NCBI GenBank assembly: GCA_048013815.1
Contig: CM106586.1
Span: 16,368,001 to 16,432,000 of the forward strand
From: Setoptus koraiensis
Taxonomy: Eukaryota > Animalia > Arthropoda
Length of the DNA: 64,000 bases
Direction: 5' to 3'
Positions 48,142 through 61,500 of the stretch are shown here, piece after piece. The notes beneath the pieces are model-generated. The model saw only the letters and a list, made by a program, of their open reading frames with translations, did not search any database and was not told where the DNA came from. The translations under genes were made by a program, and so were the position numbers. Each line of letters opens with the position of its first letter. Within the stretch, counting starts at the first letter, position 1.

Positions 48142-48230
<89 letters not shown>
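48142..48230. repeat. (TC)n microsatellite, ~44 units
   Basis: Read directly from the sequence. Confidence 0.97.
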
Positions 48231-48232
<2 letters not shown>

Positions 48233-49901
48233 CCATGTCAGTCAGTCATGGTTCAACTACTGACTGCCACCGGTGATATCGCCCTCAGAGAGGAAACTGC
48301 ATACGGCACACGTATATATGCAGGAATCGAAAATTAATCTAGCCACACATAGAAGCAGCAGGTGCACTGGTCCAACAATTGATCTCGTGCCGTCCGATCG
48401 CCATGATGTGCCCTCCAAGCATGAACTTGAACAATGAATTTGTGGCCATTTATTCATTTGGCCGACAAAAAGAACGAATGACACGGTGCCAGTTTAGAAG
48501 CGACTTGTTTGCGCGAGCTTCTGTTGTTGGCGCAACGATAGCTTGCGCCATAGACACAATCAAAAGTTTCAATCAATTTTCGTCTAGATCAACGATGCTG
48601 CAGCAGCGATAAACATTGTTTTATCAGAGAGAATCATAAATCACCTCACAGTGCACCATTCTCTACATGGGCTCACTCACAGCAGCACAACTGTGAGACT
48701 TGCGTCGTTTGGCGAGGTCAATGATTGTGGGCCATTCGCAAGTACGAAGCAGCAGCAGCATCTCATGACCGCCGACAATTGCCTAGCAAGGGAGCAAAGT
48801 CTGTAGAAGTCTGCAGTAGATGTCAATCTCGCATGCATTAGGCAGCCACCTGTGGAGCTTGTGGCGCAACTCACTGCAGAATTAAGCTGCTGATTGTTTG
48901 CAAACTCGCTAGGGCCTTGTTTCCACTGTCAGACAGTTGTGAACAATGTGAGAGACAGCGCTCAAGTCTTGCGGATTAAAAGCAAACAGCCCTAAAGAGT
49001 AAGCCCTTACAAAGTTGCAATCAACAAAACAGTCTGCTCGCTGTCTTTGAACTGTCTCGTTTGGCTTGCCAGCCAAAGGCACGGTGTCATTACACTAGTG
49101 CGACAGTGTCAACCATAACTGTCGTCGAGGCTTTGTTTCGATCCATTTAATCAAGCCAGATTCTAATTGTAATTCATCATCGCTGCGAACAATCTAACAG
49201 CAACGAGACAACTGAGAGAAAGAGAATAAAACCACTCTACCTTTGTTTCCTTGCCCTGTGTCCGACAAAATCGAGCGAACGATCTGCTTGTGAGGCAGTC
49301 ACGATGAGTCTATAGTTGCGAATGTTAGCAGATTGCTGAAACCGGTTAAACACGTTGTCATTGCATATTGCCTTGAAGTAGTTTGTTATCGGCATGGCTA
49401 GCCTTCACTTGGTCACCTATCATCGACCTATCTGTGCCTATCATCCAGTGAGAACTGCAATGTATTTTTTCTCCTCTATTTCCAAAAAACACACGCAAAC
49501 GCTCGCAGCTCGCTCGCCAGTTGCTATTATTCCGTAAAGCTGAAAAGCTAACAAGTAAGTGGCTCTGGCACTAGAATTAATTTACCCATACAACCATCGC
49601 CAATTCTGTCCATAATGTATAATGCATATGGCCGTGGTGAGTTAAATAGTAATTTTCTTCTTTTTCATCATATTTCTTTCAGCGTGAACGGCGCGGCACA
49701 AACAATAAACAATTAATATTAAATGAGTTGGTTTTCGGCACTACTGGCAGTAGTAGTCTACTGCATCCACAACCAACCACAGTCCACAGTGGACTTGATA
49801 GTGGATAGTCATCCACTATCAAGCTAGCACATATATACAGTAGTGTGCGGGAGGAACAAAAGGCCTACACACATTTCATGTATAAGTCTACTCATTATCA
49901 T

Positions 49902-50016
<115 letters not shown>

Positions 50017-50240
50017 CATGGAGAGATTTGTTTTGATAGATGGACACCGAGTGAGAGGTTTCGTTTCTTAAAAGCAACTATTCGCACCATTCGTAATTGT
50101 TTTCGCGGACCTTATATGATTTAATAGGAAACACACATATTGATCGGAGATTCCTGTTCTTGCTCTATCATCATATTATACATGATTCATATAACATATA
50201 CAGTGGTGTCTAGCAATTATAAGGTGGCTTTGCTTGAATC

Positions 50241-50490: not shown

Positions 50491-50796
50491 CTTGAATCTG
50501 AGAACTTCTTTTGTTCTTTGCTAAATAATAACAGCCTGCTACAAAGGTAATCCCCCTTTGATCTTGTCCATGCCGGGCTCTGCTACAAACAATAGTAATA
50601 TACAAGTAATGTACAAGTGGGAATTCACAAGTATGGTTGATGTGGGGCCTCTCTCTTTCTCTCTGTATTTCGTTTAGTAAATACGTTCTGCGCTATGTGC
50701 TATATTGTTTTTGTTGTTGTTTTGCTTCCTTGATTACTAGTAGCTCAACTACATGGGTGTACATAATTTATTTAATGGGCATGGATGGTAATGCTA

Positions 50797-51117
50797 TTAT
50801 AAATAGAAAATCAAAAATATTAAAACGATTACTACGACAGCCAATATGAGCATCATCTTCATGTCCTTCCACCAGTATTTTCGTTTCAATTTGCCTGCTT
50901 GTTGCTCGAATTGTGAGGCTCCTTGCTGTAGAGCGTCCGCCCTGTCATCTAATTCTGACAGTTTCTGGTCTCTCTCGAGCACTTTCTCAACATTGGTCCT
51001 CATAATACCAACCACCTCGTCAACTTGTGCCTGCGTCTGCTGTAATTTCTTCGAGGCTGCCTGTCTCTGTTGGGCATTGGCCTGTTCCATACTGCTTGGT
51101 TGCTGATTGGAGCTCAT
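50797..51117 (-). CDS. Synaptobrevin/VAMP R-SNARE, copy 1
   Basis: [61 protein letters not shown] followed by a TM helix. Confidence 0.96.
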
Positions 51118-52064
51118 GTTTGCTTGAGTTGAGTTGTAGAGCTGAAAAAGGGGTTCTGATTATCGGTATTAAACAGTTGGATTATGCTGTCGTCACTCAA
51201 AAGGATTGCTTCGCTTTCTTTGTGGTTCCTTGGAAAATATCTTGATATGATGCACACAAACAAACACACGCACACATACAAACATTGACAGATGATTTAT
51301 GACTCCATACTGACGTTGATACAATTGACGTTATATTGATGTTCGAACTAGATAAAGTTGATGAATAACAACAATCAAATCATGATAATGACATGTATAT
51401 TGACATTGTATACCACAAACATGAATATATATCAGTCAAACAAAAATAGTGCAAAAACATCAGCCTGAATGCGTAAATTTCGGCCGGCAGCAAAGGCGCG
51501 AAGTACAAATTTTTTGTAAAAAAAAATGCCTGAAAATGCACATATTCATGAATATTCAACTGCATACTCATCATTCTGGAATCAAGCGCTTTGTCTCTAT
51601 TACTCATCGCACTCTCATGGCGGCCATTTGCTATTGTTGCTGTTACGCTATGAAAGCGACCATATGAGTCAGATGTAATGGGATAACTTGTTTTTGACTC
51701 CAGCTTCTACTCGTTTACATCATCATGTACCTGTATAACTTTTACATTGGTATACGTTAAGATTTTGTTACTCTTCAGTAAACTATCGGTTGTATGGTGG
51801 AAGTGAACCACTACAAACTAGTTATGCGGACTTGGCACGTCTGCTTCTCCATCTGGGCTGTGTCTACGGTACCAAACTAGATGGCAACATTGGTCGGATT
51901 TCAGGCGGTCACATTTAAACTTTTTCTAGATGGATAACAAAAACAAATGTGGATGCAAAATCTGCTGTATTTAATACGGACATTAGACTGGACCGCACGT
52001 CTCGGATATCTAGAGGATCTATATAATAACTATTGTAGAATACCGTCATCGAAAAACAAGCCAG

Positions 52065-52721
52065 ATGATAGCTCCTCCGAAAACATCCAATACAAAATTT
52101 GCTCAAAGCAAACAGGCCTGTCTCAGCAAGAACGATCTCAGTCTCAAAGGATCTGTTGATAAGCCCATAGAGCCCCTAGTTACTTTATTGAATCAATCTG
52201 ATAACTATTACACAAGTTCCTCCTGTTCTGGCAGAATTGCACTTGTCTCAAAGCCACATGGTAAATGTAACATAAAATTAGGATCTAAAATTCTATTGAA
52301 CTACCACGAACCTATAGCCAAGGAAGAATTGATTGACGTCCTCATCAAGGAGCATGCACCATGTTATGATCGACATGGTAGTACACTAGAAACTCACGAT
52401 ATTAACTTGTGTATCTGGCTAAAGTTTGAACCATTCATCTTGCACGTATTTTGCGCTGATTTAGATGGTGCAAAGAAGTTGTTAGAGGCATCTGTTGCTT
52501 GTGGATGCAGAAACTCAGGCCTAACGATGGGAAAAGACGGGAAATATATGGTCGCAATAAGATCAACCTCTTCCATGGAGGTCCCATTAAAACAGGATCA
52601 AAGCTTTAAACTGCCAAATGAATACTACGAGTATGTATGTGACGAGGCCAACGCAAGATTGGAGGCCAACTTTGAAAGATTAGAGAAGTTCTATTCACAT
52701 TGTGTTGAAATTATTAAGTGA
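52065..52721 (+). CDS. TYW3: tRNA wybutosine-synthesizing protein 3 (methyltransferase)
   Basis: KGSVDKPI...YYTSSSCSGRI, LKFEPFILHV, CGCRNSG, MVAIRSTSSMEVPL motifs. Confidence 0.92.
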   Translation: MIAPPKTSNTKFAQSKQACLSKNDLSLKGSVDKPIEPLVTLLNQSDNYYTSSSCSGRIALVSKPHGKCNIKLGSKILLNYHEPIAKEELIDVLIKEHAPCYDRHGSTLETHDINLCIWLKFEPFILHVFCADLDGAKKLLEASVACGCRNSGLTMGKDGKYMVAIRSTSSMEVPLKQDQSFKLPNEYYEYVCDEANARLEANFERLEKFYSHCVEIIK

Positions 52722-52796
52722 TATGTACTAAAAGTCAAGAGAAGACCTTTCTAAGGAGAGATTCAGACAATACAATTGTTGAAGATATAATTTTTT

Positions 52797-53282
52797 TTAT
52801 ACTAATTCTGTCTTCGAATCATCGGCAGTCTTTTTTGGTGGAGAATCAATCACCAGGGTGACTGGACCGTCCAACGATAGATCAATATCCATGTGAGATC
52901 CAAATTTCCCCGTCTGTACCTTGTCGGATTTGTATTCTTTTTTTAAGCGTTCAACAAATTCTTCAAAGAATGGCTTGGATAGATCCCCACTCATACTCAA
53001 ATGAAAGTCTGGCTTGGTGCCTTTGAATGTGTGACATAGTGTGAATTGACTAACAATAAGTAGCTCGTAGTCGGATTCTTTGACACTTTTCATCCACCGT
53101 TTGTTGGGGTCATCACTGAAGAGCTTGAGTGTCAGCAATTTCCTAATTATATAGTCAGAGTCTGCGTGGGTGTCGTCTCGATTAATACCCAACAAAATTG
53201 TTAGACCTTGTTTAATTGAGCCAACCACCTCACCTTCGGCGGATACTTGACCCTTGAGCACACGCTGCACTATTGCTCTCAT
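52797..53282 (-). CDS. DTD1: D-aminoacyl-tRNA deacylase 1
   Basis: MRAIVQRV, SQFTL, GKFG and DGPVT (Gly-cisPro) motifs. Confidence 0.95.
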   Translation of the reverse strand: MRAIVQRVLKGQVSAEGEVVGSIKQGLTILLGINRDDTHADSDYIIRKLLTLKLFSDDPNKRWMKSVKESDYELLIVSQFTLCHTFKGTKPDFHLSMSGDLSKPFFEEFVERLKKEYKSDKVQTGKFGSHMDIDLSLDGPVTLVIDSPPKKTADDSKTELV

Positions 53283-53848
53283 TATCTAATCACAAATACC
53301 GCAGATTTATTCCCAGATATAACAGTTTCTTGTATCGACTGTTTGTAACGTCAATATGTAATATAAAAATAATAATAATTATTATAGTTGCATGTGATCA
53401 TCAGTATTTCGGAATAGAAACAAATGAATAGCGCTACTGCATTGTTTGTTCCTCTACTGCCGAGCACGACAATTTTCTTTGCTTTGTGCTTACAGATGCT
53501 CGCACACAGAAAGTTTGTCATAAGTCAGTCAGTTTACACCCAGTACATGTCATTATCACGAACTGATAGTTAATATATTCGCTGATTCTATAACAGCCAT
53601 AGGCTGTACCATCTACTCGAAATTCGCTTGTGAGCTGATTGCCGGCATCATCATATTTGCCCATAGGATATGACAAAGAAATCATCGTCATTATCCTCCT
53701 AAGTCAATTGGAAATCCAAAGAGAAAAGTAACCACCCCGATTGTGTCTGACACATTCACCCAATACTGCACTATAATTCACAAAGTTTTTATTATTAGCA
53801 TCATCATTCAGCCAACCGATTTCTAGGTATTTAATCACCTGAGCCACT

Positions 53849-54169
53849 ATGAGTTCCAATCAGCAACCAAGCAGTATGGAACAGGCCAATGCCCAACAGA
53901 GACAGGCAGCCTCGAAGAAATTACAGCAGACGCAGGCACAAGTTGACGAGGTGGTTGGTATTATGAGGACCAATGTTGAGAAAGTGCTCGAGAGAGACCA
54001 GAAACTGTCAGAATTAGATGACAGGGCGGACGCTCTACAGCAAGGAGCCTCACAATTCGAGCAACAAGCAGGCAAATTGAAACGAAAATACTGGTGGAAG
54101 GACATGAAGATGATGCTCATATTGGCTGTCGTAGTAATCGTTTTAATAATTTTGATTGTCTATCTATAG
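53849..54169 (+). CDS. Synaptobrevin/VAMP R-SNARE, copy 2 (inverted)
   Basis: Same protein as copy 1 except the last residues (IILIVYL vs IFLIFYL). Confidence 0.96.
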
Positions 54170-54349: not shown

Positions 54350-56284
54350 TTATAGTATATCTATTGGGTCTATCTTGATATCCTGATCAGCACACCAGTC
54401 GGGTAAGAATGGTATGCAGTCTAAGTATTTGCACCAGGAACAACTGTACACGGGAAATATGTATAATGGCAGGGTCAGGGCAATTAGTAATATAACAACA
54501 GATATTAGGCAAAGCCAAATTTGTATGATTTTGTTTCGCTGATTGTATTCTTTGAATGATAAATAAGGTAGTAGGGCATATGAGAGTAAAAATCCTGTTA
54601 TAAAACCAAATATATGAGCATAGTTGTCGATCCAGGGCAGTAAGCCAATTGTGAGTAAGGCTGAAGCTATAAGTATTAGCTTCATGAGAGCTCCGACTGG
54701 TTTCTCTATAAGGTCCCAACCGTTTATAACTTCGACTATCAAGCTGGCTAAAAGAGCAAATTGGCTTCCAGATGGTCCAACTTGAGTATGATAAGGAACA
54801 AAACTAGCGCTAGCAAGGTAACCCGCTATACCAGACACTATATATATGATAGCCATTCTGAGTGGACCTGTCAGACGTTCTATATCTCTCATGATATAAT
54901 ACTGTAAGGCGACTGTGATGGCTAAGTGTATGACACCAGCATGCAAGAATAGAGCGGTGAAAACTCTGTAAAATTGATCGGGATAATCTCGCGCGTAGAA
55001 TGGTACCATACCACAAACATCCTCCATACATGAAACTTGAGAACATAGAGTAGCTTCAGGATGAAAAGTTCCTCGCAAAAATGCACAATGTTCACTGTTG
55101 ATTATGCGGCATTGACCATGTATACCGATGCAGCATGGCCTTCCAACTAGCTCGCAAGACATGTGGTGAAGCGAAGGGGCGGTCGGAATCTTTTCATTAC
55201 ATATGGGCCACTTCGATATATCATCTTCCCACTCGTGAGGTTTGATTGAAGCAGGCCTCACACAATAAGATGGATCTTGACCACACACCGGGCCTGATGT
55301 GCGTCTTTTACCATTATAAAAAGGCACATCCTTTCTGTCAGCCGTTTCGTTCCAGGATAGCCACTCAGAGTTAAGATAAGAACAGCCCTCCTTTTGGGTC
55401 TGGAGACATCCAGATCGATCAGAACGTCGGCAGCAGCCTGTCGTTCTTTCACCTGCCCTATCTCGATCTATAACCTCGTATATTAGTTTGTCTCTGCGCA
55501 TGCAAGGAGTAAATTTTGCTCCTAGATGTACAAGATCGGCTGCTCTCGGCCCTTTCCAAATATTGTCTCTTTCATAGTAGCCGGTCCATTGCCACGACAA
55601 TGAGGTGACATAGATATTGCCTCTGATCAAGGTGGAACTTATGCCAAAAGGTCCATAACCGTAGAGTACTATTGCTGCTAGAAGCACCACTATTTGTACG
55701 GTTGTCACCCAATAAGTGAAATAGGGTCTGTAGTCGGTGAAACTATAAATAAGATTGCCCTGATCATGAGTGAGGTTTTTCTTGAATTTTCTTTCTAATA
55801 ATCTGCCAACCAAACCGAAACCGAACGGTCTTTTAGCCTCTCGTCGTTCTAGAAATTCATGTATGAATCTGATGATATTTTCCTTGTTGAGATCAGCGTC
55901 AACGTCGTCAACAATCTCTGCTGGTACCATTGAGTCACCATTAGCGCCTGTTGCCGATAAATCATTGTAATTAGTATTTGCCATGGGAAATAAATTGGTG
56001 GCACCCACCATCATTGCTTCGCAATCACAGGAGCGTATGTTTCGATTAGTTCCTTCGCCTATTGCTGAGCGAATTTCGCGCTGTAGTCGTGGTTGTCGTA
56101 ATTGTTTTGGGTCTTTAACACCGCCGCATCTTCTATTCAACAATCTCAAGCGTCTCTGTTGCCAAAGGTTCTGTTGTTTGATATCACGACTATCGTCATT
56201 GTTTGCGGCCACACCAAAAAAATCAGCCACTGCATCACGATATTTACGGTTTGATTTTTGCCCAGGCACTACTGCTACTGACAT
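54350..56284 (-). CDS. Inactive rhomboid (iRhom/RHBDF), single coding exon
   Basis: ADFFGV N-terminal motif, Cys-rich iRhom homology domain, PDQFYRVFTALFLHAG, GPSG (the Pro before the Ser site marks iRhoms), DNYAHIFG. Confidence 0.93.
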   Translation of the reverse strand: MSVAVVPGQKSNRKYRDAVADFFGVAANNDDSRDIKQQNLWQQRRLRLLNRRCGGVKDPKQLRQPRLQREIRSAIGEGTNRNIRSCDCEAMMVGATNLFPMANTNYNDLSATGANGDSMVPAEIVDDVDADLNKENIIRFIHEFLERREAKRPFGFGLVGRLLERKFKKNLTHDQGNLIYSFTDYRPYFTYWVTTVQIVVLLAAIVLYGYGPFGISSTLIRGNIYVTSLSWQWTGYYERDNIWKGPRAADLVHLGAKFTPCMRRDKLIYEVIDRDRAGERTTGCCRRSDRSGCLQTQKEGCSYLNSEWLSWNETADRKDVPFYNGKRRTSGPVCGQDPSYCVRPASIKPHEWEDDISKWPICNEKIPTAPSLHHMSCELVGRPCCIGIHGQCRIINSEHCAFLRGTFHPEATLCSQVSCMEDVCGMVPFYARDYPDQFYRVFTALFLHAGVIHLAITVALQYYIMRDIERLTGPLRMAIIYIVSGIAGYLASASFVPYHTQVGPSGSQFALLASLIVEVINGWDLIEKPVGALMKLILIASALLTIGLLPWIDNYAHIFGFITGFLLSYALLPYLSFKEYNQRNKIIQIWLCLISVVILLIALTLPLYIFPVYSCSWCKYLDCIPFLPDWCADQDIKIDPIDIL

Positions 56285-56849: not shown

Positions 56850-56923
56850 GTCAGCGTGGCGCAATCGGCTAGCGCGTTTGGCTGTTAACCAAAAGGTTGG
56901 TGGTTCGAATCCACCCGTTGACG
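56850..56923 (+). tRNA. trnN-GTT: tRNA-Asn(GTT)
   Basis: Cloverleaf: acceptor GTCAGCG/CGTTGAC, D-arm GCGC/GCGC, anticodon arm TTTGG-CTGTTAA-CCAAA, T-arm GGTGG-TTCGAAT-CCACC. T-run terminator follows at ~56929. Confidence 0.96.
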
Positions 56924-58583: not shown

Positions 58584-61500
58584 TTAGTTGAATTCTGCGC
58601 CGGCCTCTTTAGCATCTGCAATCGCGGGCGAAGGTGGAAATAGGAGAGGATTCAAGAGTGGTTTCTGGCAACTTGATGCATCTCCCTTTTTACATTTCTT
58701 CGATCCCTCGTCGTATTGGCTGCCTTCAGGACATTTCAGTAATTCACCTTTGAGTCCACCGCCAGATTTTGCACAATTGTAGAAATGTTTACAGTCAACT
58801 TCGAACGGTTTAGGGCCCTCCTCTGTGCAAGGGTAAACTCCCAATTGTTCCTTGAAGAAATCTCCGCTAACCTCCTCGGCGGGCTCCTCCTCCTCTTCCT
58901 CACTCTCGTCTTTGCTAGGCATGTCTTCTTCCTTGAAATCTTCCGGTTTCTTGCCTGCTTCGATGCGAGAAATAAATTAACAACAGGAGAGACAAAATTT
59001 ATTAGATTTGGCTAGCGATTGACAAAACAATAACTAGTTAGCTGTTTGATATATTACTTACCAGGCTGATCGGCGGCGCAAGTCGCAATATCTGCTAGCA
59101 TACAGATTTTAGATTTGTCATCAAACTTTTGACCCTCTGGGCACTTATAACCTTTGGACTGAATGTTCGGTCCCTCGCCTGAGCATCGGCGGAATTTCGA
59201 GCAATTGTTTTCGTCCGAGAACCATCCCTCCTTTTCACACTTGGGCTTCTCTTTAAGTTTCTCTTTTTCCCCAGGTTTCGCAGTGGTGCTGTCATCATCC
59301 CCTTTGGGTGTCGTTGATTTATCATCGGCTTTGGGAGTGGTGCTTGCCTCGTCACCTTTGGGTGTTGTGGATTTATCATCTGGTTTTGGTGTTGTTGATT
59401 TGTCGTCAGACTTCGGAGTGGTGCTGGCGTCATCGCCTTTTGGTGTGGTTGATTTATCATCGGCCTTGGGGGTAGTGCTGGCCTCGTCACCTTTGGGTGT
59501 TGTGGATTTATCATCTGGTTTTGGTGTTGTTGATTTGTCGTCAGACTTTGGGGTAGTGCTGGCCTCATCGCCTTTTGGAGTGGTTGATTTATCATCCGAT
59601 TTCGGCGTGGTGCTGGCATCATCACCTTTAGGAGTCGTTGATTTGTCGTCGGGTTTTGGGGTAGTGGATTTGTCAGCTCCATCAGGTTTAGGAGTTGTGG
59701 ATTTATCACCATCGCCCGATTTGGGTGTTGTTGATTTATCATCCGGTTTTGGAGTTGTGGATTTGTCACCCTCGCCAGGTTTAGGTGTGGTTGACTTATC
59801 GGAATCTCCCGATTTGGGTGTAGTGGATCCGTCTTCACCAGGCTTCGGGGTGGTAGATTTGTCATCCGATTTTGGAGTAGTGGATTTGTCACCCGGCTTT
59901 GGTGTGGTAGATTTGTCATCCGATTTTGGTGTGGTGGATTTGTCATCCGATTTTGGAGTGGTGGATTTGTCATCCGACTTTGGTGTGGTGGATTTGTCAT
60001 CCGGCTTTGGTGTGGTGGATTTGTCGTCTCCTTCCGGTTTAGGAGTTGTGGACTTATCACTAGGGGCAGCTTGTTGTCTCGCACTCTTGTTTTCTGGTTT
60101 CTCATCTCCAAAACCCTCGGCCTCTTCTTCTTGGTCTTCCGGTTTAGGTGTCGATTTCTTCTCTCCTTTTTTGGCTTTAGGTTTCGCTTTAGTTGCAGCT
60201 TTTTTGGGTTCCTCTTCCTCCTCCTCTTGCTTCTCTTGTTGATCAGGCTTTGGCGTCGTGGAGGCTGCAGCTTTTGATTTAGCTCTACCCTTGGCTGCTG
60301 GAGACTCTTTCTTCTTCGGTTTACCCGACTCGCCACCACCCTTCGTCGCACCTCCTTTTGTGCCCGCTGATTTGTCTTGTGGATCCTCTTCATCTTGTTT
60401 CATTTGTTCGTCTGGTTTCTTATCAGAACCTGGCTTCTTTTTATCAGATGGTTTTGCCTTACTCTCGTCATCATTTTCATTTTCGGGCTCCTCCTCTTGT
60501 TTTTCCTGTTCTTCGGGTTTAGCTTTGGACTTTTTGTCGTCTTTCTTCTTGTTTTTTGGCTTCTCTGGGTCATCCTCTTTCTCTTGACCCTCGGGTTCCT
60601 CTTCCTGTTTTTCTTGTTCATCAGGTTGTGGCTTAGACTTTTTATCCTTAGATTTCTTATCTTTGTTTTTAGGCTTTTCGGAGTCATCCTCTTTCTCTTG
60701 ACCCTCAGGTTCCTCTTCCTGTTTTTCCTGTTCATCAGGTTGCTGCTTAGACTTTTTATCCTTAGATTTCTTATCTTTGTTTTTCGGCTTCTCTGGGTCA
60801 TCCTCTTTCTCTTGACCCTTGGGTTCTTCTTCTTGCTCGTCAGGCTTTGGCTTCTTATCGTCTTTTTTCTTGTTCTCGGGCTTCTCTTGGTCCTCTTCTT
60901 TTTCTTGGCCCTCGGGCTCTTGTTTTTGTTCATCGGGCTCATCGTCTTTCTTCTTTTTCTTATCTTTGGGTTTCGCTTTCATATCATCTTCGGAGGGTTC
61001 TTCTTTCTGCTCTGGTTCGCCATCTTCTTTTTGTTGCTCATCCGGCTTGTTCTTTTCTTTCTTTCCTTTCTTATCTTTTTTGTCTTTCTTCTTTGGGCTC
61101 TTCTCGGGCTCTTCTTTTTGTTGCTCTTCTGGTTCCTCTTCTTCAGATTTTGTCTGTTCTTCATCTTTTTTCATTTTATCCTTCTTGTTTTGACGGCCCT
61201 TGTTGGCTGGACTGGCCTTCTTGAGGTCGCCCTTGGCTTTCGGCTGAGCGGCGCCCTTCTTTTGTTGCTCTGGTTGATCGGCCTCTTTCTGTTGAGCATC
61301 CTTCTCTTCATCTTGCTCTGGACTCTGTTCGTCGCTCTTAGATTTGGGTTTGGCTCCTTTGCTAGCTGGGCTTGGCTTTGATTTCTTCGGCTTTGGCTGA
61401 CCTTTTGCTGGCGTCGCGTCAGCAGGTTGCTGTTCTTCGCCTTGTTTCATTTCGCCGGATTTCGGTTCCTCGCCAAAGCCTTGATCTGGTTCACCGCTAG

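Follow-up and report, generated by a model that had tools for sequence, protein, structure and literature searches.

Inverted synaptobrevin twins in the mite Setoptus koraiensis: probable old duplicates evolving in concert across the coding sequence

Comparison of two synaptobrevin (VAMP) genes located 2.7 kb apart and in opposite orientation in the genome of Setoptus koraiensis revealed coding sequences that are identical over nearly their whole length and flanks that have mostly diverged. On the evidence of these sequences and of a third VAMP paralogue in the same genome, we consider it probable that the twins are old inverted duplicates that evolve in concert via interlocus gene conversion. 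The genes were analyzed within a 64-kb window (GCA_048013815.1, CM106586.1, positions 16,368,001-16,432,000 of the forward strand), and coordinates refer to this window unless a genomic position is given. The assembly totals 48.7 Mb and consists of two contigs of ~24 Mb each. The locus comprises the following four genes:

50797..51117, minus strand: VAMP/synaptobrevin twin A, an intronless CDS of 106 codons plus stop (Pfam PF00957, E 3e-34)
52065..52721, plus strand: TYW3 (tRNA wybutosine synthesis), intronless, 218 aa (PF02676, E 1.9e-50, nearly full length)
52797..53282, minus strand: DTD1 (D-aminoacyl-tRNA deacylase), intronless, 161 aa (PF02580, E 5.4e-47, full length)
53849..54169, plus strand: VAMP/synaptobrevin twin B, an intronless CDS of 106 codons plus stop (PF00957, E 5e-34)

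The twins enclose TYW3 and DTD1, which are convergent with each other; TYW3 is head-to-head with A and DTD1 with B. The ORFs and Pfam assignments bear out the symmetric layout, <-VAMP TYW3-> <-DTD1 VAMP->, that had been proposed by an earlier sequence-only reading of this DNA. The tRNA-related character of both enclosed genes looks coincidental, a functional tie to the VAMPs being without support. A repeat search delimited the inverted arms to 50798-51124 and 53842-54168 (327 nt, 98% complementary, with 2717 nt between them) and found them to be the sole long inverted repeat of the entire window outside low-complexity sequence. At one end, the arms reach no more than 7 nt from the start codon; at the other, they end at the stop codon.

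Many ORFs of the window are long and unbroken, and the genes of the VAMP locus are all intronless. The adjoining gene (54350-56284, minus strand) encodes an inactive rhomboid protein of 644 aa, whose best named relative, 55% identical over the full length, comes from the eriophyoid mite Aceria tosichella. S. koraiensis is an eriophyoid mite, a group whose genomes are known to be very small and to have shed their introns (PMC7738191; bioRxiv 10.64898/2026.08.24.746826).

Both twins are intact ORFs encoding a full SNARE motif and a transmembrane (TM) anchor. Their PF00957 bit scores are 117.2 (A) and 116.4 (B), and that of the third paralogue, C, is 112.6, compared with a Pfam gathering cut-off of 26.4. 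The SNARE core, including an arginine that we take to be the zero-layer residue, is invariant in 27 relatives; the KRKYWWKD motif is followed by a hydrophobic tail. The closest VAMP relatives, retrieved from the Logan and JGI collections, are 96-99 aa long and 89-91% identical; in these proteins, which carry no species assignment, variation is confined to the N-terminus and the TM tip. Relatives of the locus as a whole were sought in genome contigs, where none was found, and in metagenomes, where the matches listed came nearly all from short contigs of unrelated animals.

Base-by-base comparison of A and B over 321 nt identified five differences in total (given as A/B):

nt 6: codon 2, AGC/AGT, synonymous
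nt 301: F101I
nt 310: F104V
nt 316: L106, synonymous
nt 321: stop codon, TAA/TAG

Between nt 6 and nt 301 lies an identical core of 294 nt, established by the same comparison:

50818..51111, minus strand: identical core in copy A
53855..54148, plus strand: identical core in copy B

Thus, the exact reverse complementarity reported in the sequence-only reading was reproduced with identical coordinates, and its placement of the differences at codon 2 and at four sites in the last seven codons proved right: one is at nt 6 and the rest are in the last 21 nt. If differences were evenly spread, the probability of finding all five within the terminal 27 of 321 nt would be ~4e-6. At the protein level, the twins are distinguished by two conservative residue changes at the tip of the membrane anchor.

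Identity of this kind could be an artefact of assembly or polishing, in which multi-mapped reads had drawn two differing copies to one consensus. The exact A, B, and C proteins have no match in a public collection of 15 billion proteins, so there is no independent assembly for comparison, which leaves room for this explanation. We nevertheless regard it as very unlikely, for three reasons: (i) contigs of ~24 Mb imply long reads, which would span a 0.3-kb repeat lying 2.7 kb from its partner, (ii) the survival of the five end differences shows that no blind merging of the copies took place, and (iii) homogenisation did not extend to the distant copy C.

A six-frame search of the S. koraiensis genome identified exactly three VAMP genes, the twins and the following paralogue:

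G000:C2:16523821-16524135, plus strand: VAMP paralogue C, ~102 kb downstream, an intact synaptobrevin gene of 104 codons

Between paralogue C and the twins, 53 coding positions differ, scattered along the gene. By the Nei-Gojobori method, dS is ~1.2 and dN ~0.064, with 60% of synonymous sites being different. Synonymous sites of these VAMP genes are therefore free to change and, in the comparison with C, are near saturation, and selection at the protein level cannot account for the complete lack of synonymous differences between A and B in 294 nt. Given the 16% core divergence observed between the twins and C, the probability of 294 nt without a difference is ~5e-23. When 20 kb around C was compared with positions 40-64 kb of the window, no homology was detected beyond the VAMP unit itself, and a larger segmental duplication as the origin of C was rejected on this ground. 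The unit common to C and the twin locus extends merely from about -170 to +200 around the gene.

The following flanking elements were found, with positions relative to the start codon (-) or the stop codon (+) in brackets:

53680..53848 (-169 to -1), plus strand: proximal 5' flank of B, homologous to the 5' flank of C and not to that of A
50761..50792 (+5 to +36), minus strand: post-stop block of A, homologous to the 3' flank of C and containing AATAAA
50627..50653 (+144 to +170), minus strand: 27-nt element GAGAGGYCCCACATSAACMATACTTGT in the 3' flank of A, also present at +172 to +198 of C
51365..51397 (about -248 to -280), minus strand: 33-nt upstream island of A shared with B, an inverted-repeat match
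53544..53576 (about -273 to -305), plus strand: 33-nt upstream island of B shared with A, an inverted-repeat match

Over ~170 nt before the start codons, local alignment of B with C yields z = 27.5, with ~77% identity in the block, and the upstream region of C is the only other match to the B upstream sequence in the genome (E 1.7e-10). In the same type of alignment, the upstream region of A scores z = 1.0 against C and 3.5 against B. The 3' flanks show a different pattern. The alignment of A with C gives z = 10.3, and GAGAGGYCCCACATSAACMATACTTGT, searched with at most two mismatches, occurs at two sites in 48.7 Mb, one after A and one after C, on the sense strand at both (a control pattern gave 0 sites), whereas the sequence downstream of B matches neither that of A nor that of C (z < 0; -0.9 against C). 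Adjoining segments of the same gene therefore group differently: B with C in the 5' flank, A with B in the coding sequence, and A with C in the 3' flank. Neither A nor B has both C-like flanks together, so neither resembles the untouched parent of a recent copy. Repeats or transposons as the source of the twin flanks were rejected, as all four flanks are unique genome-wide save for the B-C match.

The flanks of A and B had been described earlier as having no visible similarity, which is nearly right and requires correction at three points: the 33-nt island, a faint similarity near -100, and an AATAAA-bearing island. The first 15 nt of the 33-nt island, TACATGTCATTATCA, have exact matches at those two sites alone in 48.7 Mb. 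Faint collinear similarity between A and B is present near -100, where A also faintly resembles both B and C, and at about -160 to -200. The third island directly follows the stop codons, with AATAAA at +25 in A and at +11 in B. The presence of such islands in both flanks indicates that the duplication is old and took in flanking DNA that has mostly decayed since. With an old duplication that included the flanks, the coding identity of A and B most likely stems from recent or continuing conversion.

A competing history is a very recent duplication confined to the coding sequence, in which an inverted copy of a 327-bp segment was placed 2.7 kb from the original and happened to land where it is expressed, with no conversion at all. 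The extent of the arms, from at most 7 nt off the start codon to the stop codon, and the zero differences in the core are what such an event would leave. We consider it very improbable, since (i) neither twin carries both C-like flanks, and an intact parent is thus missing, (ii) the five differences cluster at the ends (P ~4e-6, as above), where recent mutations would be expected to be scattered, (iii) the A/B islands persist in both flanks far outside the arms, and (iv) a coincidence of breakpoints with the start and also the end of a CDS would be improbable from the outset. An old duplication followed by recent or continuing conversion, as the sequence-only reading had suggested, is thus supported, and within this one genome the case is strengthened by paralogue C and by the conflict between flank and coding groupings.

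We infer both that conversion is the mechanism and that it is recurrent, as opposed to a single event. Repair of double-strand breaks with the other copy as the template would repeatedly overwrite one CDS with the other. Conversion tracts would start and end only in sequence that is still alike and would stop at the CDS edges, beside flanks that diverged long ago. At the extremes of the CDS, nt 6 and the final 21 nt would then escape conversion and retain old differences, and the crowding of differences in the terminal 27 nt would reflect tracts running out of homology there. The 294-nt core would represent the minimum extent of the most recent tract. The outcome would be essentially one protein made from two sets of flanks, and these sets may confer different expression, such as the neuronal and ubiquitous programmes raised as a possibility in the sequence-only reading. 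A signal of GC-biased conversion specific to the twins was not found: GC3 is 0.52 in A and B, lower than the 0.61 of C, and the values of all three VAMPs (0.52-0.61) are above those of the neighbouring genes (0.37-0.44).

The inverted orientation of the twins raises the question of the DNA between them. By gene orientation, the 2.7-kb interior contains both VAMP promoters, and the 3' ends of the two genes lie outside it. The geometry of the flip envisaged in the sequence-only reading holds accordingly: a crossover within the CDS would turn the interior around, so that each promoter came to be paired with the TM tip and 3' flank of the other twin. The inner genes, TYW3 and DTD1, would travel intact with their own upstream regions, and such an inversion should be tolerated. 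We give somewhat less than an even chance to the proposal that the 2.7-kb interior was inverted by a crossover in the course of one or more repair events; this would explain the combination of a B-type 5' flank and an A-type 3' flank in C. The proposal requires C to have been copied from a gene that had these two flanks together. A stronger version, in which the interior has been inverted at least once, C is a fossil of the other pairing of promoter and 3' end, and the two orientations may still recur or segregate, appears unlikely. The coding ends give no guidance on this point, because C is unlike both twins at all the differing sites except nt 6, where it has the A state (AGC), and neither donor and recipient nor a flip can be distinguished there.

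The same mosaic could have arisen by complementary degeneration of the duplication-degeneration-complementation type, to which we assign about an even chance. According to this scenario, the proximal 5' block disappeared from A and the 3' elements from B, with C retaining both. It contests the flip alone, and conversion would still account for the identical coding sequences. With synonymous sites near saturation (dS ~1.2), flank similarities that survive, such as the ~77% identity of the B-C 5' block, are probably constrained elements, and elements of this kind can be lost; flank groupings may then mirror the elements retained and not the order of descent. The faint resemblance of A to B and C near -100, taken together with the AATAAA island shared by A and B, points to common ancestry of the flanks and unequal decay. 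Crossovers are, moreover, expected to be rare with ~300 bp of homology, as is known from recombination work in yeast. On the other side, complementary degeneration needs two independent and exactly complementary losses, whereas one crossover in a recombining repeat suffices, and the inner genes carry their own promoters, which makes an inversion tolerable. The flank mosaic is the remnant expected from one past flip and is fitted equally well by complementary decay.

Concerted evolution via gene conversion, the reading that we prefer for the coding sequences, has close counterparts in Drosophila. The Amy-p and Amy-d genes are linked inverted ('palindromic') paralogues, in which concerted evolution is limited to the CDS and the flanks evolve independently (PMC3924832). 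The mite twins are likewise linked and inverted, with much greater similarity in coding than in flanking sequence, including synonymous sites. They differ from the Amy genes, apart from the host and the gene family, in the far smaller length of the repeat (0.3 kb) and in the presence of two housekeeping genes, unrelated to the twins, between the copies; in addition, the Amy pair is backed by a cross-species test, whereas the mite pair is known from one genome. The Hsp70Aa/Hsp70Ab and Hsp70Ba/Hsp70Bb genes are mirror-image duplicates kept alike via ectopic gene conversion, again with coding sequence as the part that evolves in concert, and for copies in this orientation, repair yields either conversion or, via crossing over, inversion (PMC3924832). 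For the Hsp70 genes, conversion is backed by shared polymorphisms and species comparisons; for the mite twins, it is backed by a third paralogue in one genome.

More than one brevin-type R-SNARE is also present in Drosophila, where the ubiquitous Syb and the neuronal nSyb, presumably under different regulation, are diverged in protein sequence and unlinked. S. koraiensis is similarly an arthropod with multiple brevin-type R-SNAREs. In the mite, however, the protein products of the twins are almost the same, and a division of labour, if there is one, would have to sit in the flanks.

The process that we propose is well known from systems of the Amy and Hsp70 type, and the mite pair adds an example and no new principle. 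The case is unusual in being so clean and compact: a single genome suffices to read it, with C serving as an internal outgroup, and three adjoining segments of ~0.2-0.3 kb each give three different groupings. If the interior does flip, the locus would offer a small natural model of how promoters and 3' ends are reassorted, and if the flip-flop were true, one SNARE protein would be shuffled between two combinations of promoter and 3' flank. For the biology of the mite, the locus means that even a genome among the most streamlined of animals retains two nearly identical genes, set in different flanks, for a SNARE at the core of neuronal and secretory function.

Besides the inverted twins A and B there is a third VAMP/synaptobrevin copy, paralogue C, located about 102 kb downstream from them and followed by a lipoyl/octanoyl transferase ORF. 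Within the window, twin B is followed by an inactive-rhomboid (iRhom-like) gene and, directly past it, a predicted tRNA gene. The features are as follows (G000:C2, contig of the window's genome; L003, the DNA around paralogue C):

G000:C2:16523821-16524135 = L003:1498-1812, (+), paralogue C, intact, 104 aa
L003:2255-3034, LipB/LplA-type lipoyl/octanoyl transferase ORF (PF21948, E 4e-32)
window 54350-56284, (-), iRhom-like gene, intronless, 644 aa
window 56850-56923, (+), tRNA-Asn (GTT) gene, predicted by ARAGORN

The iRhom-like gene is arranged tail-to-tail with twin B, 181 nt from the stop codon of the latter. The closest named relative of its product is inactive rhomboid protein 1 of Aceria tosichella (55% identity), and the product is 90% identical to an unnamed Logan protein. 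At 59264-60890, within long overlapping ORFs (59-62 kb), there are coding-like tandem repeats whose periods are 27 and 114 nt; they probably represent a low-complexity repetitive protein.

Several microsatellites were observed near the VAMP copies. A long (GA)n tract (49882-50021) is situated about 0.8 kb past the 3' end of twin A, and a complementary (TC)n run is located 1.7 kb from it (48142-48246); this pair is scored as many low-complexity inverted repeats. TG/TTTG-rich tracts are present upstream of both twin A (51247-51284; -134 to -168 relative to the start codon) and paralogue C (L003 about 970-1060; -436 to -532); these tracts consist of low-complexity sequence and were not counted as homologous.

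All three VAMP genes (50797-51117, 53849-54169, and L003:1498-1812) are characterized by GC3 of 0.52-0.61, compared with 0.37-0.44 in seven neighbouring genes. This elevation could be due to codon bias, as in a highly expressed gene, or to biased conversion.
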